Under the pieces are notes generated by a model that was not told the origin of the DNA, made no database searches, and saw only the letters and a list, made by a program, of their open reading frames with translations. Made by a program: the position numbers and the translations under genes. Source: Paramoeba atlantica (Eukaryota > Protista > Discosea). From it: a stretch of 64,000 bases of DNA. The stretch is taken from assembly GCA_977017575.1 (NCBI GenBank), contig CDRNVI010000012.1, positions 1,116,001 through 1,180,000 of the forward strand, written 5' to 3'. The stretch's first letter is position 1. Each line of letters begins with the position of its first letter. Below, piece by piece: positions 8,957-28,024 of the stretch.

Positions 8957-10330
8957 ATGGGTCAGGGAGAACGCCGTGCCGCCATTCTGCGTCGCAGAAC
9001 TGTCGATGAGCAAATTAAATACTGTATTTTGATTGAAGGAGCTTCGATTTTGCGTAAAGAAATTCAGCACAATCCAGAGTCGCAGAGAATACTTCACTGG
9101 TCTTCATGTCTTCCTTCTTCCTATCGTGAACGGATGAACGTTTCGCATGCTTTGGGTGATGGGCAAAAGGCCTCGTTCGACGAGCATGAAACCGACAAAC
9201 AAACCATTGCCCCAGAGGACGGAAGTGTATCTGAATCAGATACTACGGAAGCACAAATCAAGGGTAGTTCCGAATTAGCTTTACAGGTGGGAAATAAAAA
9301 TGTCAGTATTGAAGTAGAAAATCCAGAATTTGTTACAAATCTTTCAAAGGTGTCCAACAAAACGTTTCCATCAAAGGAAGGGATTGAAACGCCCGGAGCA
9401 GAAATTTTAACTGAGATTTCATATTATGAATCACGAAAAAATATTCCGGAAACCGGAATAGACAGTGATGCCAATCCGAATTGTGATTCACATGCTAGGA
9501 ACAAAGACTCTCCACAGAAAAAAGTGTCCAACCGCACCACAGAGCCTTCGCAGGAACTGTCACCCAGTGAGTCACTATCTCGGTGCACCTCCGAGGCGGT
9601 CCGGTTTATTATTGGGGAAAATTTTTCGAAAGCGGTGGCCCGGGGCCTTACGCACCTACAGAAGGATGTAATGGCGTTCTACTGCGTACTACTCGGAATT
9701 ACTGATAAATTGCCTAAAGCAGGAAAGAATATTTTGCTTTGCATGCTTACTAATTTTTTTTACACTTCCCTTTTCGATCGCTATATTGGACCACATAAAC
9801 GGGAGCAACCTTCTCCCCCGCGGGCCACTGCAGTATCATCGGAACTGCCACGGAAATCGAAGCGCATCAAAGACAAAGCCTTTTTGGTGCAAAAAGAGGT
9901 CGCATCAGATACAAGAACTGAAGGTGTGGAGGCAATTGTAAAACCGCGCAAAGCAAAATCCCAAGAAACAAAATATGATTATCATCTCCGGGACGAAGAA
10001 ACTTTTTCTAGATCCTCTTTGACCAACAGCACTGCAGTTAATTTATCTAACACCCCCTTTCCTACGCATGTCGCCAATCATGATATCACTTCGCAGCATG
10101 AGCTTTCTGATCATGAACCTTCGGGTGGGCTTCTTCAAAAGTATGCTCCTTACTTTTATGAAGCATTCGAGAAGTCCCCCATTCTTCCCCTTGCTTCAGT
10201 GCGGGAATGTGTTGCGTTACGCCTTGGTGCAGGCCCCCCTATCACTGAGTTACGATCAGTCGCGCAGCAGCTGCATGACTTGCAACAAATCGCGTATTGT
10301 GTTAGCGATGACATTATGTATGTAATCTAA
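8957..10330 (+). CDS. Hypothetical protein, 457 aa
   Basis: Long ATG-started ORF on the coding strand; no recognised domain. Confidence 0.6.
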   Translation: MGQGERRAAILRRRTVDEQIKYCILIEGASILRKEIQHNPESQRILHWSSCLPSSYRERMNVSHALGDGQKASFDEHETDKQTIAPEDGSVSESDTTEAQIKGSSELALQVGNKNVSIEVENPEFVTNLSKVSNKTFPSKEGIETPGAEILTEISYYESRKNIPETGIDSDANPNCDSHARNKDSPQKKVSNRTTEPSQELSPSESLSRCTSEAVRFIIGENFSKAVARGLTHLQKDVMAFYCVLLGITDKLPKAGKNILLCMLTNFFYTSLFDRYIGPHKREQPSPPRATAVSSELPRKSKRIKDKAFLVQKEVASDTRTEGVEAIVKPRKAKSQETKYDYHLRDEETFSRSSLTNSTAVNLSNTPFPTHVANHDITSQHELSDHEPSGGLLQKYAPYFYEAFEKSPILPLASVRECVALRLGAGPPITELRSVAQQLHDLQQIAYCVSDDIMYVI

Positions 10331-10717
10331 CGAATCAATGGAAATTATCATTGGTGCAATGGACGTGGTACACGCAACGCAAAACTTCGAGAAAAGATTT
10401 GAGCGGTGTCGTATACTAGAATTAAATCCGGATGTCAATGCTATCTCTAGAACTGCGAATTTTTTTCGGACATAACACGTAGAAGTAGACTCGTTGAAAC
10501 CATGATATCTTCATCTATCACCTCTATTTTAGAATCTATTCTTGGAATACATTCTATTCTTCTAGTGTCTCTTCTTCGAATATATTAGGATAGAATTTCT
10601 AACCTACCTGTATGTATCTGCATATTTCATAATCTATTAAACATTGCTCGAAAATCTCCTCCCTAGTCGACCTGAATTTACTTTTTCCCTCACCCCACCC
10701 TCCTACCCCGGACAGTG

Positions 10718-12421
10718 ATGCTCCCCAGTACCCTTCACCGGTGCGCACTCAAAACTTCCCGACACCGTCTTGCCGTCATGGCCCCTTCCCCCGAGCTCGG
10801 CATTACCATCCCCTCCCACGACACCGTTCCACTTCCCACCTCGCCGCTCCCTCCACTTACCCCCACCGGGGTCTTTCCCAAAGGTCAGTCACTACCCTCT
10901 GTAGGAGAGCGTCACACCGAGGCCCTGGGTCCACACCTCCTTCCCTTCACCACGGAACTCACCAAACGCCCCCCGTTGTCCTCTCCCTCCTCCCCAACGA
11001 GTCCCCTTCCCTCAACCACAACCCGTACCACAACTCCCAGTGTCGCCCCCTCTGTCGTAAACACCATCTTAAATCCTGCTGTCGTAAACACAACCCCCAA
11101 TCCCCCTGTCCTCAGCACAACACCCCATTCATCGGTACTCACGACAGCATCGAACTCCGCTGTTCCTTCCTCCCCCTCCCCCCTTTACGACCTCGCGACC
11201 GGACTTCCCTTCTCCCCTGTACTACGCGACGCCCTTCACGAGAAATCCAGCGACTTCTCGTCTTCCTCTTCCTCTTCTTCCTCTTCTCTCTCCTCTCCCT
11301 ACTGGGTCACCGACACCCACCTCGCGGCCTCCGGTGTCGAGCTGCTCCCCCAGTTCCGAGGCAAAGGGTTCGACACCCGTCGCCTGGGAAGACACCCCCC
11401 CGGTCCACAACACCGGTCCAGCCCCCCCGAGCGTCGGTTCGCGCAGGGCCACGATCTCGAGCTCACCCCCACGGAGCAAGCCATGGTCGACGCCGGGGCG
11501 ATGCTCTACCACCTCTCCCAAACCCGTGAGGGGGCCACGCTGGAGGGGCTCCGCGGGCGGCTGGTCCCGACCGACGCGCTCACCGCGGCGCCGTTGCCCG
11601 CTCCCACCTCGAATGTGCTACGGGAGGCGGTGGGGGGCTACCCCACCAGTCAGTGGGTCCGGGAGGAGTTCCTGTGCCTCGGGCTGCGGCCGGCCCCGGA
11701 GGCCCGGGCGATTTGTATCACGGTGGAGGAGACGTATGAGGATGAGGATGAGGCGGGGGGTGGTGGGGGGTCTACGGATTACCTCCACCGCCTGGGGTTC
11801 TCGCGTCGTCCCGTGGCGAGTTACTCGGAGACGTATTACAACCTCGCGGATCTCGTGGTGTCGTCTGAGTTGCTGACGAGGCTGCGGGAGTGTTACCCGA
11901 GGAGTGCGAGTACGCGGAAGTGTTACCGGCCAACGGTGGCGGTGCCATTGCTGAAGGTGGCGCTACGACACTCGCTTACCTCTCCGTTTTGGGTTACCAT
12001 GAAAGGGGCATTGTATGCCGGGTCACGTGTCGTGGATGACTCCCTGGGGGTACGCCCCATGGCGAGAAGTGAGGCCGTGCTGCACAACACGGAGTGCTGT
12101 GCGCAGTCGGAAGATTTTTTGGAACGACTGCAAAGTGGGGTACCTCGAGCGATGTCTGGGTATAACGGAAAGCCGTTCTCCGAGGAGTCACAGTCGGCGC
12201 TGCGGGAGGCCAAGGGGGTCCGAGGGTTCAATAGCGTGTATTGGATGACCCGGAAACAGGCACGGGAGCTGGGGTCGGGGATTCGCCCTGGTTCCGTGTC
12301 GGTGACAGTGCCCATGTCAGGTGGAACTCGGGAATTTTATAACGTGGACCAAACGGAGTCACCCACCCGGATTATGGATCGTTTGCAGTTTTTGGGTCTC
12401 CTGCAGCCAGTGGGCGTATGA
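10718..12421 (+). CDS. Tc38/p38-like protein with 4 divergent ArdC-N-like repeats and a long Pro/Thr/Ser N-terminal region
   Basis: Repeats DLATGLPF..SPYWVT..LYHLSQT; ..TSQWV..YYNLADL; SASTRKCY..SPFWVT..LHNTE; SGYNGKPF..SVYWMTRKQ..FYNVDQT. Presequence-like N-terminus. Confidence 0.75.
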   Translation: MLPSTLHRCALKTSRHRLAVMAPSPELGITIPSHDTVPLPTSPLPPLTPTGVFPKGQSLPSVGERHTEALGPHLLPFTTELTKRPPLSSPSSPTSPLPSTTTRTTTPSVAPSVVNTILNPAVVNTTPNPPVLSTTPHSSVLTTASNSAVPSSPSPLYDLATGLPFSPVLRDALHEKSSDFSSSSSSSSSSLSSPYWVTDTHLAASGVELLPQFRGKGFDTRRLGRHPPGPQHRSSPPERRFAQGHDLELTPTEQAMVDAGAMLYHLSQTREGATLEGLRGRLVPTDALTAAPLPAPTSNVLREAVGGYPTSQWVREEFLCLGLRPAPEARAICITVEETYEDEDEAGGGGGSTDYLHRLGFSRRPVASYSETYYNLADLVVSSELLTRLRECYPRSASTRKCYRPTVAVPLLKVALRHSLTSPFWVTMKGALYAGSRVVDDSLGVRPMARSEAVLHNTECCAQSEDFLERLQSGVPRAMSGYNGKPFSEESQSALREAKGVRGFNSVYWMTRKQARELGSGIRPGSVSVTVPMSGGTREFYNVDQTESPTRIMDRLQFLGLLQPVGV

Positions 12422-12908
12422 ACAACATTCACGCATGGTTTGTGTTTGAGAATGTCTGTTTCTGTTTTTTTCTAAATCATTAATTGTGTTGTAGAGTAAA
12501 ATCACGAAGTAGATCAGAAGTCGGTGTGTAAGTTAATAGGCCTTTTGGTGGGATATTTTTTTACTAAATGCTACTCTGATTTAGAAATGTTTGATTTTTT
12601 ATCTAGCCCTTAGTACACTAGAACCCCTTTTCTCTTATCATGCGTTGTAGATGCGATTCACTTTACTATGAGATACTCAGAAAAGGAACTCTTAAATATG
12701 TATCATATTTCGTAATCACATTGACAAACTTTGTATAAATTCGTAACGATAAGAATCGGGCGGCTTTTATCTTTGTGTCACGGTTTGCACATCATTTTTC
12801 TTTTGTTGGTCAACGGCAAAGCTTTTGTATTTTCATATTTTTGCTCAAAGATTAAGCCGAATCTTACAGGAGATATTCTTTTTATCTTTCCGTGTTTTTT
12901 GCTACCTG

Positions 12909-14306
12909 ATGATTCGACTTTCGTCTAAATGGTTCAAGTCTAGCAAAATTTTTGTTCCGTCTTCCGCTACCTCAACGGGATCCAAGACCGCTCCCTCCGC
13001 CGCTCCTCGTGCTTTAAGTGCTGCCACTGGAAAACCGTATCCCTCCGGCCTGGCCCAAACCCTAAACATTCGCGCATTTCGCTCCAACCTATGGCTCACG
13101 GAAGCCCAAATGGCATTGTGTGGTGTCACGCTACGTGAGGATCAGCGTGGCAAAGGGGTCGTCGTCCCTCGCCGTCCTCGATCCTACACGCTCTACAACG
13201 CCTCACAAACCACTGACTTTGACAAAGTCCGCGCCATGCAGGGAAAGCTTAATGTCACCAACGCCTTGACCGGGAACGCAATCGCCGCCACGGCCGCCGC
13301 AAAACTCACCGCCTCCCTCGGGAACTTCCCCACCAACCAGTGGGTCACACGACACCAAATCCACGCCCTCTCCTTAAAACTACTCCCCGGCGCCACCCCT
13401 GTAGTCATCACACACATCACTCTAAAAAAACGTCCCCCACGAAAACGACCCTTGGCCATTACACACCCCTCCTCCTCCTCCTCCTCCCCCTCTTCTCCCC
13501 CCACCTCATCCACCAAACGTGCCACAACTCTCACAACGGCTCATCTCTCACCTTCTTCGACTTCTACAGCTTCCCCTACATCTCGCTCGTCTTCTTCGTC
13601 TTCACCCTCCCCTTCCCCCACGACCGCTTCTTCTACTGCTACTGTCACTACCACCACTACGACTACTACTACTCACTACTACAACCTGGCTTCTCTCGCC
13701 CACCCCTCCACCCTCTCCCTCGCCCACACCCTCTACCCCCGCTCCGCCCTCTCCCGCAGGCCCTACCACCGCGGCGTCGCCTACCCCTTACTCCGGGTCG
13801 CCCTCGAGCGCGGGTTCCGCTCCCCGTACTGGCTCAGCCGCGACACCGCCGCACGCCGGCGGGTCGGGCTGCGGGAGGGGGCGACCGGGGCCGCGGTGTG
13901 CTTCTACCGGAAGCGAAAGCTGGTGCTGTACAACGCCGAGGAGACGACGGCCCCGGGGAGGGTGGTGCCGCGGGGGGGGACGGGACGAACGGCCCCCCGG
14001 GGGGGTCGGTGGGGTCCCGGGGGGTTGACGTTGCTTCCGAGGTCGGCGATTTCGGGGGGGCAGTACCCGGAGCCGACGCGGTCGGAGTTGTTGGAGGTGG
14101 CGCAGCAGAGAGGGTACCGTTCGCCGTTGTGGATGACACGGCGGCAGGCGGCGCATTTGAATGCGGAGGTGCGAAGCGGGGAGGAGCCGACGGCGGTGCA
14201 TTTTTATAAAGGGTCGCTGGAGTTGTTTAACGCGGAGCAAACGAAGAATCGGTACTTTTTTGCGAATCGACTGAAAAAATTTAGACACGTGCGAAAGAAG
14301 GGGTAA
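12909..14306 (+). CDS. Tc38/p38-like protein, 4 repeats, Ser/Thr insertion in repeat 2
   Basis: SAATGKPY..SNLWLTEAQ..LYNASQT; NALTG..TNQWVT..YYNLASL; SALSRRPY..SPYWLS..LYNAEET; SAISGGQY..SPLWMTRRQ..LFNAEQT. Starts MIRLSSKWFK (mitochondrial-like). Confidence 0.85.
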   Translation: MIRLSSKWFKSSKIFVPSSATSTGSKTAPSAAPRALSAATGKPYPSGLAQTLNIRAFRSNLWLTEAQMALCGVTLREDQRGKGVVVPRRPRSYTLYNASQTTDFDKVRAMQGKLNVTNALTGNAIAATAAAKLTASLGNFPTNQWVTRHQIHALSLKLLPGATPVVITHITLKKRPPRKRPLAITHPSSSSSSPSSPPTSSTKRATTLTTAHLSPSSTSTASPTSRSSSSSSPSPSPTTASSTATVTTTTTTTTTHYYNLASLAHPSTLSLAHTLYPRSALSRRPYHRGVAYPLLRVALERGFRSPYWLSRDTAARRRVGLREGATGAAVCFYRKRKLVLYNAEETTAPGRVVPRGGTGRTAPRGGRWGPGGLTLLPRSAISGGQYPEPTRSELLEVAQQRGYRSPLWMTRRQAAHLNAEVRSGEEPTAVHFYKGSLELFNAEQTKNRYFFANRLKKFRHVRKKG

Positions 14307-15025
14307 GGAGATGAATAAATAGAGGAAACGCTAGCTCGTAAAAAAGGTAATCTCCTTTTTTGGGGGGGCATGTCAGGCGTCCTTTTTGCGGTATCTTGTC
14401 TTGAATGTAAGTTTCGGTGCATTATGGTGCATGCAGTGCGTATCATACACTGCAATGTACACTGCAACGGTGTAACTGCAAACTAATTGTTATTCACTCG
14501 GTAGGAGTAAACCTCTATACTAGAGGGAGGGCGTGGTACTTCACATCCCGTGGCCCACGATTCGCTGGTTTTATAGAGATGAAAACGACATGACCTCTTT
14601 CGTTATGACGATGTAACACTTTCAAGAGCATTTTTCGATCTTCGACAATGGCATGTACGGCTGTCGCACCGTTCTGGGCATCCAACTTATTCGGCTTCAA
14701 TCACCTCGTACACACACATTGTACATTTTACCATTTACCATGACAATTACATCTCCGATTGAAACAACTTTAATTGTTTCTCAGTTCGAATTGTATAGAT
14801 TTAGTATCTCCACCTAGCAAAATTATCTATTTCACAAATTCAGATAATATTTTCACATCCAGCAAACAAAACAAACCACAAAGAAATCCTTTTTTCCACA
14901 CTACCACCCATCCACCCCCAGCCATGCTCCGTTCGGCCGTCCCCACACGGTGAACCTGACCCCACAACACCCAAAACCACCCACCCCAACCCAAAAACAC
15001 ACCCTTCCCCCCTTTTCTCCTCTCC

Positions 15026-16156
15026 ATGTTCCGTCTCTTCCTCCCCTCCCGCACGCCCTTCTCCCCCCGCTCTCTCGCCTACAGCGCCGCCACCGGTGCC
15101 CCCTACCCCGCCGCCACCGCCGCCGAGCTCGCGGCCAAGGGCTACCGCTCCAACCTGTGGCTTACCCGAACCCACGCCGCGTTGGCTGGGGTTGCGCTCC
15201 TCACCGAGGAGATCCCCAACGGCCACCCCCTCCCCCTCTCCCGGGGACTCGTCACGTTATACAATGCCGACCAGACCACCGACCCGGGCCGTATTAACGC
15301 GTTAAAGGGCCAGCTGTTCCCGACACACGCCCTCACGGGGCTACGACTCGGTCCACAGGCCTCGGCAGCGATTGCCGCCTCCGCGCGTGTGATCAGCGGG
15401 GACGCACGCACCTGTAATGAGTGGGTCACGGCACGAGAGTGTGAGATACTCGGGTGGGGACGACGCGGGGGTTCGAAGGAGAGGGCGGGGAAAGGGGTCT
15501 CGGTGGAGGTGGTGGTGGAGCAAACATCGACGGACCCGGACGGGCTGCCGAATGTCACCGAGGTGAGGAAGGTGGTGGAATACGTGAATTTGACGGAGCT
15601 GGAGAGCCCGTGGAGGGTGCGGACGGCGAGGGAGATGTACCCGATGGCGGTGTCCACGGGGCATAAGTACTCGATTGAGCCCGCGCTGGTGTTGTTGAAG
15701 GCGGCGGTCAGGTATGGGTACTCCTCGTGTTACTGGCTCACGTCGGAGGGGTGTAAAGACCTTGGGATTCAGGTGCGTACTCCCGAACAAGGGGTTCACC
15801 TGCTCCTTCCTCGGCGGAACTCCGAGGTGGTGTTGTATAATGCGGACAATACGTTGGGGAGAGCCAACATCGTAAAGGCGGCGTACCGCGCCCGGTTAAA
15901 ACCACGCTCCGCCAAAACAGGCTTGTTGTTTCCCCCGGAAACGGGATCCCAGTTAGAGAAACACCGGGAAGAGCGTGGGTTTGGCAGTCCATACTGGTTA
16001 ACTTACCCCCAAGCCTTCGTGATCGGGGTGAAAATACTCTCTAACGAACGCCCGAAGACAATTATGATGTCTGGTAAAGTGACTAACTTGTTTAACGCGG
16101 ATCAAACGGATAATCCCCGAAAAGTTTGCCTCTATGCCGAGGATGGAAGGTGGTGA
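15026..16156 (+). CDS. Tc38/p38-like protein, 4 repeats
   Basis: SAATGAPY..SNLWLT..LYNADQT through SAKTGLLF..SPYWLTYPQA..LFNADQT. Starts MFRLFLPSR. Confidence 0.85.
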   Translation: MFRLFLPSRTPFSPRSLAYSAATGAPYPAATAAELAAKGYRSNLWLTRTHAALAGVALLTEEIPNGHPLPLSRGLVTLYNADQTTDPGRINALKGQLFPTHALTGLRLGPQASAAIAASARVISGDARTCNEWVTARECEILGWGRRGGSKERAGKGVSVEVVVEQTSTDPDGLPNVTEVRKVVEYVNLTELESPWRVRTAREMYPMAVSTGHKYSIEPALVLLKAAVRYGYSSCYWLTSEGCKDLGIQVRTPEQGVHLLLPRRNSEVVLYNADNTLGRANIVKAAYRARLKPRSAKTGLLFPPETGSQLEKHREERGFGSPYWLTYPQAFVIGVKILSNERPKTIMMSGKVTNLFNADQTDNPRKVCLYAEDGRW

Positions 16157-16602
16157 ATTACACATTTTAGAGCAAGCTCACGCGTCTCGTAACGTTCTTC
16201 AGGTACGTACCTAGACAGTTTGGACTCGTCTTCTTTGCTTAACCAACTCAAATTATTGTGTTGCCCCCACTAAAACAAACTTGCAGATTTTTGTAAAACT
16301 GATTAGATATTAAAGATACGGTACGCAAAATCGTGTTGTAAAGTACATAGCCTACATAAAGTACATCTACGAATTTCTCGGTGTTCCGTTAGACTTAAAC
16401 GTGAAGGCTTGGCGTACACACAGCTTTCTACAATAATCCACATTAGAATAGAATTTTTTACGGAACAACGACTTACAGTAGTACCATTACAGCTTTTTCT
16501 CTTTTTTTATCGTGTTGGACAACTATAATTTTCAATAATCAAAGTCGTATACAAATCATTGACAAAACTCTTATTGGCTTTCCTTACATCCTACACTTTA
16601 TA

Positions 16603-17727
16603 ATGTTGTTTCGGAACCTCTCTTTCTTTGCGAAACAAGTCGCCTCAAAGAAACCCAATTCCACTCTCCCCGCTGCTTCCGCAGTTTCCGCGCTCACCGG
16701 CGCGCCTTATCCCAAAAGCAAAACCACCGAACTCGTCGCCCGTGGGTTCACCTCCCCCGTATGGCTAACAGAGAAACAGATGGAGACCATCGGGGTGGGG
16801 CTGAAGCCCGGGGCCCAGGGAAAAGGTCAAAAGCTCTCCTTCTCGGCCGGAACCTCCTGCACACTCTACAACGCGACCCAGACTACGGACCCTGCGCTGA
16901 TCGAGTCTTTGATGGGTCGCTTGCACCCGACGAATGCGATTACCGGATATGACATTGGTCGTGAGGCCGCGCCTTTGCTGCTGAAGCGTCTCGGGAACTT
17001 TCCTACAAACGAGTGGGTGACGGAAAAACAAGTCTCGGGTCTCGGATTGAAATTAAAACCTAAGGCAAGGGGTGTGGAGATTGAGCTCGCGTTTTCTTCC
17101 CCTTCCGCAGACCCTATAAAGGACGAGGGGCTACTCCTGGATCGTGGGGTGACGGTGACGTATTACAACGTGGGAGATCTCGAGAACCCGGAGGTGGTCA
17201 AACGTGCGAAACGACTGTCCCCGATTTCTGCCTCCACAGGGCGTAAGTATGCGAAGGAGATTGCCGTTCAACTGCTACGTGAGGCACTGCAGAAAAGGTA
17301 CGAATCTCCGTTTTGGTTGACTCAGAATGCGTGTCGAGTTTTGGGACTGACGTTAAAGCCACAGAGCGAGGGGGTGCCGGTCTCGGTTGCGTCCTCGTCC
17401 AAACAGATTGTGCTGTTCAATGCGGACTGCACTAATAACCCCTCCAAGGTGGCTTCAGAGTCGTACAAGGCACAGTTCCAACCACGCTCTGCGGTATCTG
17501 GGGCATTGTATCCCGAGCCCACGAGCTCGGAGCTCTCATCGTTCGCGCTGAAAAACAAGTTCCGTAGCCTTTACTGGCTGACGTACAAACAGGCGAGCTT
17601 CCTAGGGGTGGACATAGTGCCAGGACAGAAACCGGCAGAGGTGTTTTTAGGCTCCGTTTACGTTAAGGTGTACAACGCCGACCAGACCACGAACAAGAAG
17701 AAGGTAGAGGAGCACGCGACCAAGTGA
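16603..17727 (+). CDS. Tc38/p38-like protein, 4 repeats
   Basis: SALTGAPY..GFTSPVWLTEKQ..LYNATQT through SAVSGALY..SLYWLTYKQA..VYNADQT. Starts MLFRNLSFFAK. Confidence 0.88.
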   Translation: MLFRNLSFFAKQVASKKPNSTLPAASAVSALTGAPYPKSKTTELVARGFTSPVWLTEKQMETIGVGLKPGAQGKGQKLSFSAGTSCTLYNATQTTDPALIESLMGRLHPTNAITGYDIGREAAPLLLKRLGNFPTNEWVTEKQVSGLGLKLKPKARGVEIELAFSSPSADPIKDEGLLLDRGVTVTYYNVGDLENPEVVKRAKRLSPISASTGRKYAKEIAVQLLREALQKRYESPFWLTQNACRVLGLTLKPQSEGVPVSVASSSKQIVLFNADCTNNPSKVASESYKAQFQPRSAVSGALYPEPTSSELSSFALKNKFRSLYWLTYKQASFLGVDIVPGQKPAEVFLGSVYVKVYNADQTTNKKKVEEHATK

Positions 17728-18265
17728 GCCGCGGGGTGCGAGGATCACCGGATGTCTGCATGGGAGCGTCTTGATGTGTCATGATTCTCCTCTTTTTGGT
17801 AATTAGTTTGTTTAGATTATATTTTTTACGATATACTGAATGTGTGGTATCACACACACCTCGTCTTCTGAATCTTGGAAAATGTTTAGAAATGTGTGTA
17901 TTCCATAATAAAAATTGGCAATAGAGTACTTTCAGAGTAGAATAGTATGTAATTTTTGTGGCCTTCTTTTCTCTCGCACTATTTATATGATTTCTGGCTC
18001 CTTACACGATACCATTTTGAATACGTAAGGAATCACAATGGAGAACACAAGAGTAACGAAAGTTTTTTAATTCGCAACCCTTGTTTATCCTTCATTTACG
18101 AAATCTTTTTTTAGAGATTTTAGATGGTACTCTACTTATTAAACCCATGGCGGCGAATAAGACATAACCGAAAGAAGGATTTACCGAAAAATAGGCCTTT
18201 GAAGGCTTCACACGTACCTCTCCATTTTTTCTCTCGAAGTTGTTAAGCACCTTTTTTCAACGCTA

Positions 18266-18294
18266 TTTTTCATCCTCTTTTTTTCACTTTTTAG
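18266..18294 (+). promoter_or_regulatory. Polypyrimidine tract plus AG, candidate trans-splice acceptor (example; similar tracts precede many genes)
   Basis: TTTTTCATCCTCTTTTTTTCACTTTTTAG ending 23 nt before the ATG at 18317. Confidence 0.5.
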
Positions 18295-18316
18295 CCCTTT
18301 GAGTTTCGTTCCCGAC

Positions 18317-19090
18317 ATGTTTGATCAAACCCCTCCACAACCCCAATCACTACTTGTGAGCCGATTTCTTCTACCCCATCTTCACGCTACCGATTCCACC
18401 CCCTCCCCTCCCACATCCCATCTCGGCAAATCCCGTCGGTTACTGCACCCACCGGAGGTTGATCTCCTCACCCTCACCCAGCATACCCTGTGGCCGCATC
18501 ACTCTTGGAACCGCGATGTCCAGGCGTGCATGTGGGCCGGTGTGATCTGCGACGTCTCCGGGGAGATCCCCACGGAGCTACGCTGGGCGGGTTTTCTGCT
18601 ACATGGCAACCTTACCTGGGAAGCGCTCCCGCGTACAACACGCCGCGTAATACTCTCTAACAACATGCTGGGAGGGACGCTGGACCTCACCGCATTGCAT
18701 GACATCGTGGAATTCTTCTCTGTGTCGTATAACCGGTTGGGAGGAACGCTGGAGCTGCGCGAGTTGCCTCCAAATATTGCTACTCTAAATGTAGCGCACA
18801 ATCGATTCACCGGAGGGGTGGATCTGCGGATGCTTCCCAATACGCTCACCGGACTGTTTTTACAGGATAACTATTTGAGTGGTGTGGCACACATCCCAAG
18901 CGATCCGGACGCCCGGAAGAATAGAGATCCAAAAACGATAGACCTTACTTTGAACCCGAATTTAATCGTATTTCCCGACGTGGGAATTATCCGAGAAATA
19001 CGGTACGATGGAAGTGCCGAGCCGTGGGAGTATTCCTTCCTGGTTCTTGGCGCTTTGGCCGCAGTTTTAGGTATTGATTTGATTTTTTAA
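18317..19090 (+). CDS. LRR protein with C-terminal hydrophobic segment
   Basis: ACMWAGVIC cap, LPxxLxxLxLxxNxxxG repeats, terminal SFLVLGALAAVLGIDLIF. Confidence 0.85.
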   Translation: MFDQTPPQPQSLLVSRFLLPHLHATDSTPSPPTSHLGKSRRLLHPPEVDLLTLTQHTLWPHHSWNRDVQACMWAGVICDVSGEIPTELRWAGFLLHGNLTWEALPRTTRRVILSNNMLGGTLDLTALHDIVEFFSVSYNRLGGTLELRELPPNIATLNVAHNRFTGGVDLRMLPNTLTGLFLQDNYLSGVAHIPSDPDARKNRDPKTIDLTLNPNLIVFPDVGIIREIRYDGSAEPWEYSFLVLGALAAVLGIDLIF

Positions 19091-19196
19091 TCAAACTGCT
19101 ACAAAAGTTTGACGGGTTGAATATCCAAGTATCGTAATATCTGTTGAAGAAAATGCTTTTTCACTTCAGTAAGCTTTGAACTCATTTTATGTAGTA

Positions 19197-19481
19197 AACC
19201 ATGTTCCAGGATAGTATACCCATGCCCACTTAGTATGCCGACCCCCCCCTTCCCAGCAACAGGAGCGTGATACGTGCCTTTTTTAGAAGCGCCAGAGCAT
19301 TTTTCTAGCAATCACACGGTATTAAATCGCATTTTAAGGTCAAGACACCATTTTTCTAGCAACTACAGATGAGAAACGCGCCGCGAAGCGGCGCGAAAAT
19401 TTTTTTCTGCATTTTAGACAAAATTTAGTATACCGTACCCACTTAGTATACCTACTAGGTATACTATCCTGGAACATGGTT
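19197..19481. mobile_element. MITE, 24-bp perfect TIRs, TA-flanked
   Basis: TA|AACCATGTTCCAGGATAGTATACC ... GGTATACTATCCTGGAACATGGTT|TA; contains the hairpin CGCGCCGCGAAGCGGCGCG. Confidence 0.85.
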
Positions 19482-19525
19482 TAGTACCAAACTGTGCCGT
19501 TTCTTCAGAACTTCAGAAGCTACTA

Positions 19526-19814
19526 CTCCCCCTGTCATTAATAATGATAATCTTAAAAAAGATATCGTTCTATGTGGTGAAGACTCTTAAAAAATTATCA
19601 ACTTATTTTCATGCACGCAAGATTTTCTTAAAAAAAAAGTTTTTTGAACTAAAAAACTACTGGTAAGGTTTCAAAACCGGCCCAAATTCGGGTTAAAATT
19701 TATCATTTTTGACCTGAAAATCGTGTTTTTTGGCGAAAACTATGTACTACCCCTGCCATTAATGATAATGATAATAATAATCTCAAAAATATTATCATTA
19801 TCATTATTAATGAC
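19526..19814. mobile_element. Degenerate MITE of the TA|CTCCCC-terminus family
   Basis: Left end TA|CTCCCCCTGTCATTAATAATGATA; partial inverse ATTATCATTATTAATGAC at about 19797-19814; outermost right TIR bases missing. Confidence 0.5.
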
Positions 19815-20081
19815 TTTTTTTGCACTATTTTCGTTATTTTTCGGAATTTTTATTATACCTGTAGCTAGTTATTGTACCGGGGAGGTACATTAACACGGAC
19901 GGGGGTTTACTTTGATTTATTAGTATTAAGTTATTAGTATAAGTTTCACACATGATTCTATGTTTTTTATAGGATCATCAACTTTTTTCTCGACGATACG
20001 CTCATAACATCTTTATAAGGCATTATTTTCTTATCATTGTATTAGTTTTTTTTTCTTGTGCTAACACGCTACATCGGTAGA

Positions 20082-20948
20082 ATGCTGCAAAATGCATTGT
20101 TCTCTGACCCACATGCCCCTGGACGAAACTCCGAAGCAATCTCAGATACCCCTCCTTGCCGACTGGGAAAAGTAGCTGGCATTATTTTACCTCCACAGGT
20201 TGCTCTCGATCTTTTTCTGCAAAACATCACGTCACGCGATCCTTCTTGGTCCACGGAGAGAGATGTTTGTAAATGGGGACACGTATCCTGCGATGAGAAT
20301 TCCACTCTTCGCAAGCTTATGTGGTCAAACCTTGGTCTTATGGGGACTCTTGCATGGCGCTTTCTTCCGCACAGCCTTGAATTCATACTTCTTGGAGGCT
20401 ATGGCAGTAATAATGAGCTTTCAGGTTCCCTGCCTGCTGCGCACCTCCCAAGGAATTTGGTCACACTGTCGTTGTCGGAGAATAAATTCTCGGGAGAGCT
20501 TTATCTGCTAGACATGCCTCAAACTCTCCTAGATTTGTCCGTTCGTTCGAATTGTTTCTATGGCGTGCTTTACCTTCCTGATTTACCACCTACGGTAAGA
20601 ACATTTAGTGCCTCCTACAATAAATTCTCCGGTCCCCTTGTCCTTGATAAACTCCAAGAATGTATTGTAGAATTGTATCTCACAGCGAATTTATTTGAAG
20701 GGAGTGTTCGATTAGACCAATTGCCATTTACAATGCGTCGACTTCACCTGTCCGACAATAATCTTTCTGGGTGCATTGAACTTCATTCACTACCGGTTAC
20801 TCTTGTTGCGTTGTTTTTACACTGTAACAAGTTTAGCGGACCGCTTGATGTATCTCATGTACCCCAATCACTCCAATCGCTCTATCTTTTCGGAAACCAG
20901 TTCACTTCAGTCTACCCCGAGGTACTTCCATCTTGTGTTAAAATATAG
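20082..20948 (+). CDS. LRR protein (23-aa repeats)
   Basis: VCKWGHVSC cap followed by about 8 LRRs. Confidence 0.88.
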   Translation: MLQNALFSDPHAPGRNSEAISDTPPCRLGKVAGIILPPQVALDLFLQNITSRDPSWSTERDVCKWGHVSCDENSTLRKLMWSNLGLMGTLAWRFLPHSLEFILLGGYGSNNELSGSLPAAHLPRNLVTLSLSENKFSGELYLLDMPQTLLDLSVRSNCFYGVLYLPDLPPTVRTFSASYNKFSGPLVLDKLQECIVELYLTANLFEGSVRLDQLPFTMRRLHLSDNNLSGCIELHSLPVTLVALFLHCNKFSGPLDVSHVPQSLQSLYLFGNQFTSVYPEVLPSCVKI

Positions 20949-21304
20949 AACTGGGGATACCATGAACTCCGAAAACGATATCACTGTATTGGTTGTATAT
21001 TTAATGGTTGTCCTACACTATACACCTAATACACCTGCACCATACTGGGGGTATGTTATCGTGTATTAATGTCGATAGTGTACCCTCCCCTGTTTAAGGC
21101 AGATAGGGTGCTCTGGTGATTCTTGTTTACGGCTCTAAGATCTTTTCAAGCTTTAAGATCTAAAGTCCCTGTTTTTGAAATCCTTTTCAACGTTCTTGTT
21201 CTTTTATTGTTGTACCTATAGCTAGTTATACTGGTGAGTACATAAACCCGGATGGGGGTTTACATTTCCCGTAATGTATTCACTAACACTGGCACCGTGC
21301 TTGA

Positions 21305-22651
<1,347 letters not shown>

Positions 22652-23319
22652 GGTTACAGCGTATAGAGTAAGTGGGTAGCAAAAGGCGTTTTCAGAAACG
22701 CATTAATTGGGCTACTTGAATTGTCATGATTTTGCATTAATGTTGAACTCGTAATCTTCTTGGATTCGAAATTGCGCTGTTGTGGGCTATCTGCTTTTTT
22801 TATTTGCACATCGAAAGGTGTGCATCTCGTATTGTGAAATAATTCTCTTGCGACTAGAGAATAGAATATTTCTGTTGCTTTCTTCTGCTCTGGGAGTGCA
22901 TTTTGTAGTTGCGCTTTTTTGCTATTTCGGGGCCTTTATGTCATGTAGGAAAAAAATATACATGTGTACTGCACGTATTATAGAACACTTTATACTTCGT
23001 GCAGGTCACTATTAGGGTCACTATTAGGTCACTATTAGGTGCACGAGAATGTTTCAAAATGCATTCAGTTGTCCTACACCACTACTCAATCGCTTGTTTT
23101 CCATTGTTTTACCACCGCGTTTAACGAATCTACTATTCCTTATGTAGGTAATGCACGGTAAAAAATATTGATAGATGTACTAAAAACAATTAGAGGATTA
23201 GAGGTGGTCCTCCTTTTAAGGGTCCTTTCGAAATCTAAAGGCATTTTCTTTTTCATGCAAATTAAATTAAAGAAATGTATTTCTATGTACTGCCGTTGCC
23301 ACATTGACCTTCCCTCTAC

Positions 23320-24534
23320 ATGCATTCCGGGTCTCTTGTCTTACATTTTCACGCAACCAGCATTGCACGTGGAGAGCAAACGAAGGTCTTTTCCCAGCCC
23401 TATTGTGCCGTGAGTGCCGCCACGGGGAGAAACTACTCGCTTGCCATTTCCCAAGCGCTTACCCGGCGTGGTTTTCTATCTCCTCTGTGGATCACGGAGT
23501 CTCAGCTTGTACTCGCTAATGTCGCTGTTAAACGTGCACATCGACATAGGGGCTACCGCGCCTACTTGCCAACTCCGGGCACTAATGAGTTCTCGCACGT
23601 GATGTTGTACAATGCAGAGCAGACGACCAACTCCTCTCGGGTGGAATCGTTGAAAGGAAGGTTGGTGCCTGTGTTTGCTCTGACTGGTCAAGAAGTGGCA
23701 GACCGGGCGGTGTCTATTGCGTTGGCCGCCCAAGCCCAGGCTCACCCTAGCAACGCGTGGCTCACAGCGAGGCAAGTAGAGTTTCTTCAACTTCCTTTAC
23801 TTGAGGGGGCGCTCCCGGCGAGGGTTTACATGGCCAAACTTCTGGACGAGGGGGCGCAGAGTTTTCCCTGTTCTTCTGATTCTAACGTAGAGAGCACAAA
23901 ACCAAAGGAGGAGTGCTATTACAACATCAATCAGCTACGTAATCCTGAGGAAGTGGCTCAACTACGCAAGCTGGCTCCAATCTCCTCTAGTTCCGGAAAA
24001 AAATATAAAGAGGAAGTGGCACTTTCACTCATGCGTGCAACACGAGCCAAAGGATTTTCTTCTCCATTCTGGATTACCGCCGGAGCTGTCACCTCACTAG
24101 GGTTACGGCTTATCGATCCCGACGGCGGCACTACAGTACACTTTTTTCATAGGTCCATGTTACTTTTTAATGCGTGTCAAACAGACCAACCGCAGAGGGT
24201 GGCAGCAGAGGCATTTAAGGCGCAATTTACCCCCAGATCTGCGATCTCCGGTAGCTGTTACCCTGAGCAACCCGCAGATATACTTTCCCGTGCCGCGCAT
24301 CGCATGAAGCATAAAAGTCTCTACTGGCTGACCCAAAAACAGGCGGCATTTCTCGGAGTTGAAATCCTGCCAGGTCAAAGTCCCGTGTTCGTATCAATGG
24401 GCGGAGCAAAGATTCGAATGTTTAACGCGGACCAGACCAACAATCGATCTCGAATTGAAGAACGATTCAGGAAAAAAGGTACCCATGAAAAAGAACGTAG
24501 TAGCCTCGACACATCTTCCTCTTTCACACACTAA
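23320..24534 (+). CDS. Tc38/p38-like protein, 4 repeats
   Basis: SAATGRNY..SPLWITESQ..LYNAEQT through SAISGSCY..SLYWLTQKQA..MFNADQT. Confidence 0.88.
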   Translation: MHSGSLVLHFHATSIARGEQTKVFSQPYCAVSAATGRNYSLAISQALTRRGFLSPLWITESQLVLANVAVKRAHRHRGYRAYLPTPGTNEFSHVMLYNAEQTTNSSRVESLKGRLVPVFALTGQEVADRAVSIALAAQAQAHPSNAWLTARQVEFLQLPLLEGALPARVYMAKLLDEGAQSFPCSSDSNVESTKPKEECYYNINQLRNPEEVAQLRKLAPISSSSGKKYKEEVALSLMRATRAKGFSSPFWITAGAVTSLGLRLIDPDGGTTVHFFHRSMLLFNACQTDQPQRVAAEAFKAQFTPRSAISGSCYPEQPADILSRAAHRMKHKSLYWLTQKQAAFLGVEILPGQSPVFVSMGGAKIRMFNADQTNNRSRIEERFRKKGTHEKERSSLDTSSSFTH

Positions 24535-24735: not shown

Positions 24736-25860
24736 ATGCAGCCCACCACCCCCTTCGCCCCCTCCGTCCCCGGCTCCCCCACCTTCCTCCCCCCCGAGTA
24801 CAACCTCTCCAGCCCCGACCTCACCCTCGCCCCCCCGCCCCACGCCCCCGCCCTGGAGCTCGAGGGCCCCGCCCAGCTGCTGTACAAACTCGAGGAGGAG
24901 ACCCGAGCCCACAGCGAGCGCGCCCTCGGCCTCCTCGAGGCGCTCCGCGCGACCGTCCAGGCCTACCGCGGGCTCAGCGAGCAGCTCAGCGCGGAGCGCG
25001 CGGAGGCGTACAAATGCCTCCGCCGGGTCGACCGGATTGTCTCGCGGTACGGCTCCGTGGAGGACCCGATCGTCGCCAGTGATGGGTTTACCTATGAGCG
25101 AGGGGTGCTGGAGAGGTATTTGGAGGATTGCGAGCGCGCGTCCCAGACCCCGGTGAGTCAGCAAACGAAGGAGCCGTTGGAACGGACGTTGTACCCGAAT
25201 GCGAGTTTGAAAAAGTTGGTGGATTTGTTGAAAGGGTTGCAGCTGGCGTCGGTGTATAATGCGGGGAGTCCCACGACGGGGGCGGGGAGTCGTGGGCCGG
25301 AGTTTAATGGGAGTGATAGTTTGACGGAGCTGTCGTCCTCGCATGACCATAGTCCGGTAAGTGGGTTGGAGGGTCAACGAGTGGTGAGTACCCCGCACGG
25401 GGGAATATCGCAGATGGCTTCTACAATCTTATCTACACCAACTCCAAATAACGCAGCTGGACACCGGCGAAACCACGGAGTCAGTGGGGGCAGCACTCAA
25501 GGACCGCTCTTGGCGAATGTTACCCCAGGAAACAAACCTTGGGCTCGCCAACGGGGACAGAATCGTGACTCACATTTACAGAAAAGTCCCTCGGACTACG
25601 CTCTGCCGGGGAATTTGGTTATGGGACATTCGAGTACTGGAACTAGCAGGCAAGGGGTTATGGATCACCCCGAAGGCGGCACCCCCCCTCACACTCACCC
25701 TTGTCTACGAATTTACGGCCGGTGTAATTACGGGGAGCGTTGTGTGTATGCCCCTTATCCATATGAGGTGTGTTTAAGCAACTTAAAGGGGAAGTGTCGC
25801 CTCGGTGCACGATGTCCCGAACCTCATCAAGAGATGAAAGTTGGAACCCCAAGTGACTGA
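24736..25860 (+). CDS. U-box domain protein with C-terminal CCCH-like zinc fingers
   Basis: DPIVASDGFTYERGVLERYL..PVSQQTKEPL..LYPNASLKKLV (U-box); CLSNLKGKCRLGARCPEPH (C-x7-C-x5-C-x3-H) preceded by a degenerate finger. Confidence 0.85.
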   Translation: MQPTTPFAPSVPGSPTFLPPEYNLSSPDLTLAPPPHAPALELEGPAQLLYKLEEETRAHSERALGLLEALRATVQAYRGLSEQLSAERAEAYKCLRRVDRIVSRYGSVEDPIVASDGFTYERGVLERYLEDCERASQTPVSQQTKEPLERTLYPNASLKKLVDLLKGLQLASVYNAGSPTTGAGSRGPEFNGSDSLTELSSSHDHSPVSGLEGQRVVSTPHGGISQMASTILSTPTPNNAAGHRRNHGVSGGSTQGPLLANVTPGNKPWARQRGQNRDSHLQKSPSDYALPGNLVMGHSSTGTSRQGVMDHPEGGTPPHTHPCLRIYGRCNYGERCVYAPYPYEVCLSNLKGKCRLGARCPEPHQEMKVGTPSD

Positions 25861-26284
25861 ACGTGGTCACCGGTTGCTTTTAATACTTTCAAATTACCCA
25901 CCAGTTAGTGGTGTAAGATTTGGATCTTTGAAGAAACAGGGCAATATGTGATTTGGTAGGGAGGCTGGAGAAGGCATAGAGGCGTTAGAGATAGTGTACT
26001 GACACAGTACCTAATGAATGAAACTGTTCCTTAGATTGTACATTGCAGTTAAATTAAGCATAGGCATATTTCGTTGTCTTATAGTATACATCATGTATGA
26101 TAGAGGAAGTCGAAGAAGTACATACACTGGATTTCGCTCTATCTCAATTCTGTAATTGCAAACAATTGGTAATCTTAAATTCGGTAGGTCATTTTCTGTC
26201 CTTAATTTTTATAGCAATACTATCTTAAGACATCGTAACCTATTTTCTCTTAGAGTTTCATCCTTCGGGGTACATTTTAAAACT

Positions 26285-28024
26285 ATGAACTCTCGATTAT
26301 CGTCTTCATTAGACGCCATTGAAAAGGTATTCGCCCCTTCTCATCTAAAGTCATTACGAAACCAGCGACGCCAAAATAAATCCACGAACCATATCGAATC
26401 CGGATTCCCTAAACTCACCAATCTATCAATTGCTTGGAGCTTGAATGCAAATTGCCAGAAACATAGAACACCTTGCATACACTCCGTCACGAGTGACTTT
26501 TTTCGACATAAACAAGTCTCAAAAAGATATTACAGCACTCACACCCCTAACACATCCATTGAGGAGGTAGTTCCCCTCTCTTCATCTCTCTCTCCCCTTA
26601 CGACCCCCCGCACCCCTCCCGATACCCCTTCCACCCCTTCCCATCATGATCCTCCCCCTCCCACCCCACACACACCCCAAAATTCCCCTGAACCCCCTCT
26701 CCCTCCGAACCCCACGAACCCCCACCATACAACCCCCACCACCCCCCTCCCCACCCCCCTTCCCTCCACCCCCTCCCTCTGGCCATCCACCTCTACCGCC
26801 GACCCCACCCACGGCCCCCTCCACTACGTCCACGCCGAACTCGATCTCCTCCGTTCCTACCATCTCCCTGCCCTCGCCTCTCTCCCCTCCCCCTCCCCCT
26901 CCCCCCTCTCCTCCCCCACCCCCCTCCCCTCCCCCCTCCACACCGCCGCCACCCACCTCCTCACCACCCCCGGCAAACTCCTCCGTCCCGGTCTCATCTG
27001 CCTCATGGCCTACGCCCTCCTCCCCCTCCCCCTCTCCACCGCCCTCCACACCCAGGTCCGTACCCACCCCACGCTCTACCGCCAACTCCCCACCCCCACG
27101 CAGCTCACCCGGACTCCCCACCAGACCCCCCCCTCACCTTCCCCCCCCTCCTCATCTCCTCAGGCCACAGCGCACCTGCCCTCTGTAGCCTCTGTATCTT
27201 TATCGACTCCTACTACTCCTACGACTACCACTACTCCTCCTCCCATGACCTCCCTTCACCCCATCCTACGCCTCGCTGCCGTCACCGAGCTCATCCACAC
27301 CGCTTCCTTAATCCACGATGACATTCTCGATGGCGCCACGACCCGTCGCGGGCGTCCCTGCTTACATCAGACGGAGCGTGGGGGGACCGCGACCGCCGTG
27401 CTCGCGGGGGACTACCTGTTAGCGAAGGCCTCCGGGGCCCTGGCGGCGCTGCGGGAGCCCGAGGCGGTGGTGTGTATGAGTCGCGCGCTGGAGGACCTCA
27501 CCAAGGGGGAGGTGATGCAACGGGAGGGGGTGGGGGGGGTGCGGGGGTACCTGGAGAAGAGTTACTGTAAGACGGCCTCGTTGCTGGAGAACGCGCTCAG
27601 TGCGGTGGGGGTGGTGTGTGTGGGGGAGGGTGCGCCGGAGAGGAGGTATGCGGCGGATTTTGGGCGACACCTTGGGGTGGCGTTTCAGATTGTGGATGAT
27701 TGTTTGGATTTTACGGGGGATGCGAGGAAGCTGGGGAAGGAGGTGCATGCGGATTTGCAGTCGGGGATCGCGACGCTTCCGGTGCTGTTGGCGGCGGAGA
27801 AGGATGAGGGGGTGCAGGCGCGTGTGCGACGGAAGTTTGAGGTCCCAGGCGATGTGGATTACACACTTGACGTCGTGCAGAAGTTACAGACTGTTCCACA
27901 GGCTCAGCAGTTGGCGTGGCAGGAGTATGAAAAGGCAATGGTCGCGTTGCATCAGTTACATTCTTCTCCGGCTCGGGAGGTGCTGGCGAATGCCGCTTCG
28001 TATGTTCTCTCACGTTCTGAGTAG
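26285..28024 (+). CDS. COQ1: Long-chain trans-polyprenyl (solanesyl/decaprenyl) diphosphate synthase
   Basis: GKLLRP, ELIHTASLIHDDILDGATTRRG (FARM), YCKTASL, FQIVDDCLDF (SARM); long Pro/Thr insertions. Confidence 0.9.
   Translation: MNSRLSSSLDAIEKVFAPSHLKSLRNQRRQNKSTNHIESGFPKLTNLSIAWSLNANCQKHRTPCIHSVTSDFFRHKQVSKRYYSTHTPNTSIEEVVPLSSSLSPLTTPRTPPDTPSTPSHHDPPPPTPHTPQNSPEPPLPPNPTNPHHTTPTTPLPTPLPSTPSLWPSTSTADPTHGPLHYVHAELDLLRSYHLPALASLPSPSPSPLSSPTPLPSPLHTAATHLLTTPGKLLRPGLICLMAYALLPLPLSTALHTQVRTHPTLYRQLPTPTQLTRTPHQTPPSPSPPSSSPQATAHLPSVASVSLSTPTTPTTTTTPPPMTSLHPILRLAAVTELIHTASLIHDDILDGATTRRGRPCLHQTERGGTATAVLAGDYLLAKASGALAALREPEAVVCMSRALEDLTKGEVMQREGVGGVRGYLEKSYCKTASLLENALSAVGVVCVGEGAPERRYAADFGRHLGVAFQIVDDCLDFTGDARKLGKEVHADLQSGIATLPVLLAAEKDEGVQARVRRKFEVPGDVDYTLDVVQKLQTVPQAQQLAWQEYEKAMVALHQLHSSPAREVLANAASYVLSRSE

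Follow-up and report, generated by a model that had tools for sequence, protein, structure and literature searches.

The Tc-38 gene array

The 64,000-nucleotide stretch analysed here (the window) comes from contig CDRNVI010000012.1 of the Paramoeba atlantica assembly GCA_977017575.1 (positions 1,116,001 to 1,180,000) and carries an array of five genes that are paralogues in the kinetoplastid Tc-38/p38 (RBP38) family, within its Perkinsela-like (prokinetoplastid) branch. Each gene is a complete open reading frame (ORF) encoding four ArdC-N/Tc-38 repeats, whose coordinates are given below as placed by a hidden Markov model (HMM).

Gene 1, 10718..12421, + strand: 567 amino acids (aa), start ATG 10718; repeats at 11186-11563, 11567-11887, 11894-12136 and 12149-12391
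Gene 2, 12909..14306, + strand: 465 aa from the first ATG; repeats at 13011-13250, 13257-13724, 13734-14000 and 14037-14288
Gene 3, 15026..16156, + strand: 376 aa; repeats at 15077-15313, 15320-15634, 15638-15895 and 15902-16147
Gene 4, 16603..17727, + strand: 374 aa; repeats at 16681-16923, 16924-17211, 17221-17478 and 17479-17724
Gene 5, 23320..24534, + strand: 404 aa; repeats at 23407-23664, 23668-23970, 23977-24231 and 24232-24477

In gene 1 the repeats follow a long N-terminal region rich in Pro, Ser and Thr, while gene 2 holds a Ser/Thr/Pro-rich insert of ~75 aa within the hairpin of repeat 2. Gene 4 is the slowest-evolving and most canonical copy. Polypyrimidine tracts lie upstream of all five genes. 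The TTG at 12825 proposed by the ORF lister as the start of gene 2 is an artefact of the bacterial code, the first ATG being at 12909.

Repeat modules, family membership and fold

The original prediction counted 20 repeats in the five genes, a figure on which the motifs in the protein alignment and a repeat-built HMM agree; Pfam gives independent support for the modules. Run against the six-frame translation, the HMM found exactly 20 domains, all of them within these ORFs (each at E 1e-13 to 1e-29), and no further repeats in the rest of the 64-kb window; one caveat is that this model is circular for its own 20 repeats and informative on the remainder of the window. The Pfam Tc-38 family (PF20054) matched all five proteins (E 1.6e-21 to 1.1e-41; 76.2-140.8 bits, with a Pfam gathering cut-off of 23.2 bits) in three to four separate stretches per protein, and ArdcN (PF08401) likewise matched all five (E 7.7e-09 to 4.3e-25). 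For Tc-38 and ArdcN, respectively, the E-values were 1.6e-21 and 7.7e-09 in gene 1, 5.9e-33 and 4.3e-25 in gene 2, 5.2e-24 and 5.3e-19 in gene 3, and 1.7e-28 (in four stretches) and 3.1e-14 in gene 5. The earlier assignment of the repeats to an ArdC-N (PF08401) module linked to kinetoplastid Tc38/p38 was correct, being both a Pfam match and a published relationship (PMC6222260).

Comparison of the four-domain structural model with ArdC by VIA-align gave a clear score, unlike Foldseek, in which the whole four-domain model had no match at E <= 0.001 and ArdC was top-ranked at E 2.1e-03. The ESM Atlas feature search pointed to ArdC-N only at a sub-threshold score (0.82). The modules conform to the ArdC-N fold, and their number, four per protein, lies inside the range of 2-6 of Tc-38-like proteins.

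Relatives and the encoding lineage

Searched exhaustively with a profile, 1.84 billion representatives yielded 432 proteins at E <= 0.001. The top matches were genes on a 19-kb ENA contig from a related lineage (hereafter L001), followed by transcripts of Papus ankaliazontas and proteins of Perkinsela sp. CCAP 1560/4 (KNH08381, KNH07939, KNH07778, KNH01405, KNH05906 and KNH05611). The GenBank names of three of these Tc-38 proteins are evident errors: KNH07939 is called "tRNA/rRNA methyltransferase", KNH07778 "actin" and KNH05611 "F-type H+-transporting ATPase beta chain". When gene 4 and an RBP38-like protein of Neobodo served as queries in word-indexed searches, only 6 and 10 relatives, respectively, came back, with no named trypanosomatid among them.

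In BLAST clustering, genes 3-5 join the Papus and Perkinsela proteins, and the RBP38-like group forms a separate 15-member cluster that includes a Neobodo designis protein. The full-length tree likewise separates the window genes, L001, Perkinsela and Papus from the RBP38-like clade (split 86/93). The original prediction of a lineage-specific toolkit is partly supported: it stands in its family and fold, it overstated the lineage specificity, and its mitochondrial targeting is putative.

Encoding by a kinetoplastid is supported by a spliced-leader exon-like sequence, by the nearest homologues in Perkinsela and Papus, and by the arrangement of the genes on one strand. The exon-like sequence, at 1336-1370, lies inside a leucine-rich repeat (LRR) gene region, ends ...CAGTTTCTGTACCTTGTTG and is followed by GT. 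Several public sequences come from the same organism: a 4,963-base ENA contig (L002) has 99.5% DNA identity to window 16419-21374, and other ENA assemblies hold pieces that match genes 1 and 3 at 99% identity. An L002 protein that appeared to be a 90% relative of gene 4 was rejected as such, since it belongs to the same organism and its gene call is fragmented.

Evolutionary history of the repeats and paralogues

A maximum-likelihood tree was reconstructed from the 32 repeats that the five genes of the window and three genes of L001 encode together. The repeats cluster by position and not by gene, with clades for repeat 2 (100/100), repeat 1 (91/87) and repeat 3 (91/92); repeat 4 is paraphyletic, requiring two changes on the free tree, and a single origin is still allowed. 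This pattern means that the four-repeat protein is older than the gene duplications, as the original prediction had it. Its further observation that repeat 2 is always the divergent one also holds: it has N-x-W-V/L, and YYN in place of L-Y/F-N-A-x-Q-T.

In the full-length tree, gene 1 and the first L001 gene (L001 1247-2638) are an orthologue pair (98/97) with the same loop insert in repeat 1, and gene 4 pairs with the second L001 gene at 94/90. Two L001 genes and two proteins of Perkinsela fall with genes 4 and 5 in a clade with 98/97 support. For genes 2 and 3 there is no counterpart in L001; gene 2 joins gene 1 and its L001 orthologue at 92/87 in one tree, and a clade of genes 2, 3 and 4 was not rejected (approximately unbiased (AU) test, p 0.093). 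Forcing the five window genes into one clade cost 22.7 log-likelihood units (AU p 0.01), so that a single recent burst yielding the whole array is rejected. At least the split between gene 1 and genes 4 and 5 is older than the divergence from the related lineage.

Gene order in related lineages

The genes of the region all share one strand, and the array is accompanied by the following neighbours.

18299-19090 and 20058-20948: two small LRR genes, between genes 4 and 5
21416-22651: GAPDH gene, between genes 4 and 5
24736-25860: U-box/CCCH gene, downstream of gene 5
26156-28024: polyprenyl synthase gene, downstream of the U-box/CCCH gene

L001 is collinear with the window from ~9548 to 38381. 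Upstream, its gene corresponds to window 8957-10330 (E 2e-26); downstream, its genes correspond to the U-box/CCCH gene (E 9e-59) and the polyprenyl synthase. Between these shared flanks L001 has three Tc-38 genes against five in the window, and neither LRR nor GAPDH genes; the block at window 17728-23319 is either an insertion in the window lineage or a loss in the L001 lineage. Gene 5 and L001 5582-6712 are each the last gene before the U-box/CCCH gene. The call for the second L001 Tc-38 gene starts too late, an in-frame ATG lying upstream (region L001 3991-4107).

Tandem pairs are common in the Tc-38 family, as demonstrated by the following loci.

L011 10001-12389 (LFNC01000091): Perkinsela Tc-38 pair, 337 + 400 aa
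L007/L008: trypanosomatid-type locus with an RBP38-like gene (349 aa), a Tc-38 paralogue (752 aa), a dynamin-like GTPase and an inositol trisphosphate (IP3) receptor
Logan contig of SRR34068980: bodonid-like Tc-38 pair, 339 + 350 aa

In Perkinsela the nearest copies occur singly or as the one pair listed, which has unrelated flanks; this pair was rejected as syntenic, its CCCH gene being unrelated to the U-box/CCCH gene of the window. The trypanosomatid-type locus corresponds to Tb927.8.2740 to Tb927.8.2770. This correspondence was drawn because Tb927.8.2770, the IP3 receptor, is treated in publications about the acidocalcisome, about Ca2+ homeostasis and about phosphoinositide signalling. Among the loci compared, the five genes form the largest Tc-38 array. 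An identical five-gene set in trypanosomatids, which the original prediction had named as what would remove the novelty, was not found among them.

The GAPDH is 64-67% identical both to bacterial type I enzymes and to a Neobodo GAPDH, the only Neobodo match in a search that returned mostly bacterial-type enzymes and was uninformative for taxonomy; it has an insert of ~50 aa in the NAD-binding domain. Its basic C-terminal tail ends in N-K-L, which could be a peroxisomal-type (glycosomal) signal.

Composition islands within the array

In genes 1, 2 and 3 the coding strand flips from strongly C-rich to G-rich inside each gene. The islands and flips are located as follows.

10600-12400: island, flip near 11500-11700 (gene 1)
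13200-14300: island, flip near 13800-13900 (gene 2)
14800-15800: island, flip near 15300 (gene 3)
21416-22651: island (GAPDH)
24736-25860: island (U-box/CCCH)

Across the flips in genes 1-3, the GC skew (200-nt) moves from -0.5 to -0.7 to +0.25 to +0.42, and GC content peaks at 0.74-0.78 in genes 1 and 2 and at ~0.71 in gene 3. Third codon positions change from ~0.5-0.8 C to 0.5-0.8 G; in gene 2, for example, C at this position is 0.72 in codons 281-320, after which G reaches 0.70-0.80. Gene 4 displays the pattern mildly and gene 5 is free of it. The N-terminal region of gene 1 and the hairpin insert of gene 2, both rich in Ser, Thr and Pro, fall in the C-rich halves, and the Gly/Arg-rich stretches fall in the G-rich halves.

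The tree tool flagged genes 1 and 2 for deviant composition, and their branches are long. The islands probably explain much of the apparent divergence, long branches and deviant composition of genes 1-3, and caution against reading the differences among these genes as specialisation. A rival reading would hold that genes 1-3 are drifting or decaying duplicates whose differences from genes 4 and 5 stem from a local mutational process and not from functional specialisation, leaving only genes 4 and 5 as working copies. The third-codon switch from C to G, the position of the Ser/Thr/Pro-rich and Gly/Arg-rich inserts in the matching halves, and the deviant composition and long branches of genes 1 and 2 all speak for decay. 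We nevertheless regard it as improbable: the reading frames of genes 1-3 are open and their four repeats still recognisable (each at E 1e-13 to 1e-27), the orthologue of gene 1 in L001 is conserved and has the same repeat-1 loop insert, and the GAPDH and U-box genes, which are surely functional, carry the same islands.

Proposed function of the array proteins

The reading that best accommodates these data, and which we consider probable, is that the array encodes an imported set of four-module single-stranded DNA (ssDNA) binders acting on kinetoplast DNA (kDNA); it is drawn from the family, the fold, and the biochemistry of ArdC and p38. Each protein is in essence a string of four ArdC-N modules, predicted to bind ssDNA, that follows a short basic N-terminus, and all five would be imported into the mitochondrion. 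There the four modules may jointly form a long interface that binds single-stranded kDNA, the predicted targets being replication origins or unwound intermediates that are held open and protected, as has been shown for p38/Tc38 of trypanosomes. Individual paralogues probably prefer different sequences or partners, and the array probably arose by old tandem duplications of a gene that already had four repeats.

The first 25 residues of genes 1-4 contain 3-4 Arg/Lys, no Asp/Glu and 4-10 Ser/Thr, and these N-termini resemble kinetoplastid presequences and the M-R-R or M-L-R-R starts of the RBP38-like group. The upstream in-frame start of the L001 orthologue of gene 4 reads M-F-R-F-S, which is also presequence-like. 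DNA runs of 2023-2024 give full coverage of the stretch. A small run of 2015 (X1), of uncertain type, has short contigs only over 10909-12689 and 15896-16071; the former comprises gene 1 and sequence past its stop, and the X1 contigs are compatible with a gene 1 transcript, without amounting to proof.

Beyond the family membership, fold, repeat history and partial synteny documented above, the mitochondrial location, the binding of ssDNA or kDNA and the division of labour are what we infer. Several points weigh against this interpretation. The full-length tree does not place the five genes as orthologues of p38 itself. Gene 5 has a weak N-terminus, in which only two residues are basic and position 19 is a Glu; the presequence check was a crude residue count on which the GAPDH control scores similarly; and among the sequencing runs on record for the stretch, none is RNA. 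Furthermore, the earliest description of RBP38 was as an RNA binder, and its orthologues in Leishmania have been recovered from nuclear fractions on telomeric DNA, so that even the family's type member has a debated target.

These last two observations each suggest an alternative. The proteins could be mitochondrial RNA-binding proteins whose modules bind single-stranded RNA (pre-edited mRNAs or guide RNAs) and modulate its stability, in line with the original assignment of RBP38, with the NCBI name "mitochondrial RNA-binding protein RBP38" of two Perkinsela relatives, and with the fact that proteins which bind single strands often take DNA as well as RNA. The NCBI names, however, were transferred automatically and are not tests, the solved homologue ArdC is an ssDNA binder, and knock-down of p38 produces a kDNA replication phenotype; we consider this reading unlikely. 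Alternatively, some or all of the proteins might act outside the mitochondrion, for instance on G-rich telomeric or other nuclear ssDNA. The Leishmania recoveries, from nuclear-enriched fractions on telomeric G-strand DNA, and the lack of a clear presequence in gene 5 point in this direction, but Tc38 in T. cruzi gives no consistent nuclear signal and four of the five proteins start with what looks like a kinetoplastid presequence, which leaves a nuclear role with a low probability.

Implications

The family, its ArdC-N origin, the 2-6 repeats and a 30-member Perkinsela expansion are already published (PMC6222260). New here are the array size, the partial synteny, and the C-then-G islands that overwrite genes 1-3 and fit the low-complexity inserts. 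The present data add gene-order and phylogenetic detail to a published family and do not describe a new kind of system. The "Perkinsela-specific" expansion is common to Papus and at least two other relatives, and part of it lies in an array that is conserved. Work on how early-branching kinetoplastids replicate their kDNA gains from it a few candidates for origin-binding or ssDNA-coating proteins, among which gene 4 is the best first candidate because it is the slowest-evolving copy.

The overlap with the composition islands is the more unusual side observation of this analysis. A speculative extension, to which we assign little weight, is that the prokinetoplastid Tc-38 branch is organised around an old, partly syntenic array whose members work as a set, for example by forming a mixed coat or by each reading a different class of the unusually massive Perkinsela-type kDNA, with three of the five being rewritten at present by C-then-G mutation islands. 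If true, the array would be a natural experiment in the tolerance of an ssDNA-binding repeat protein to directional mutation pressure.

Comparison with known systems

The array proteins are distinct from three known systems. ArdC of plasmid R388 (PDB 6I89, 6SNA) combines one ArdC-N domain with a C-terminal metalloprotease, whereas the window proteins have four ArdC-N domains; Pfam detects no protease domain in them and the genes are eukaryotic and chromosomal, which places them outside the ArdC anti-restriction proteins. XPC/Rad4 proteins, in which a transglutaminase-like domain is followed by the beta-hairpin domains (BHD1-3), acquired the domain independently (PMC6222260); the window proteins have no transglutaminase-like domain and no direct sequence match to the beta-hairpin domains, and are not members of this group.

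The trypanosomatid minicircle-origin ssDNA-binding protein p38/Tc38/RBP38 (Tb927.8.2740; PMC10719067) resembles the window proteins in family, in its length of ~340-400 aa, in its four repeats and in its basic N-terminus. Tc38 binds TG-rich and universal minicircle sequence (UMS) ssDNA, carries a signal for the mitochondrion and changes position cyclically around the kinetoplast (PMC2654453). The window genes nevertheless fall outside Tc-38.1, the p38/RBP38 orthologue group: they form a separate clade, and the first repeat is degenerate in the RBP38 group. The flanking genes also differ, the RBP38 locus having the 752-aa Tc-38 paralogue, the dynamin-like GTPase and the IP3 receptor, and the window having the U-box/CCCH and polyprenyl synthase genes downstream.

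The closest likeness is to Tc-38.12. Tc-38/p38 proteins consist of ArdC-N domains, acquired at the base of the kinetoplastids and duplicated to 2-6 copies per protein, with 3 or 4 most frequent and with low-complexity expansions common in loops and linkers (Krishnan, Burroughs, Iyer and Aravind 2018, PMC6222260). The same study divides the family into 12 paralogue clades, the twelfth being the 30-member Perkinsela expansion. Like the array, Tc-38.12 has tandem ArdC-N modules, low-complexity expansions in hairpin loops and linkers, and a restriction to kinetoplastids. It was described in PMC6222260 as a lineage-specific expansion with no gene order; here the clade includes Papus and other relatives, and five of its members lie in one array, with three syntenic in the relative L001.

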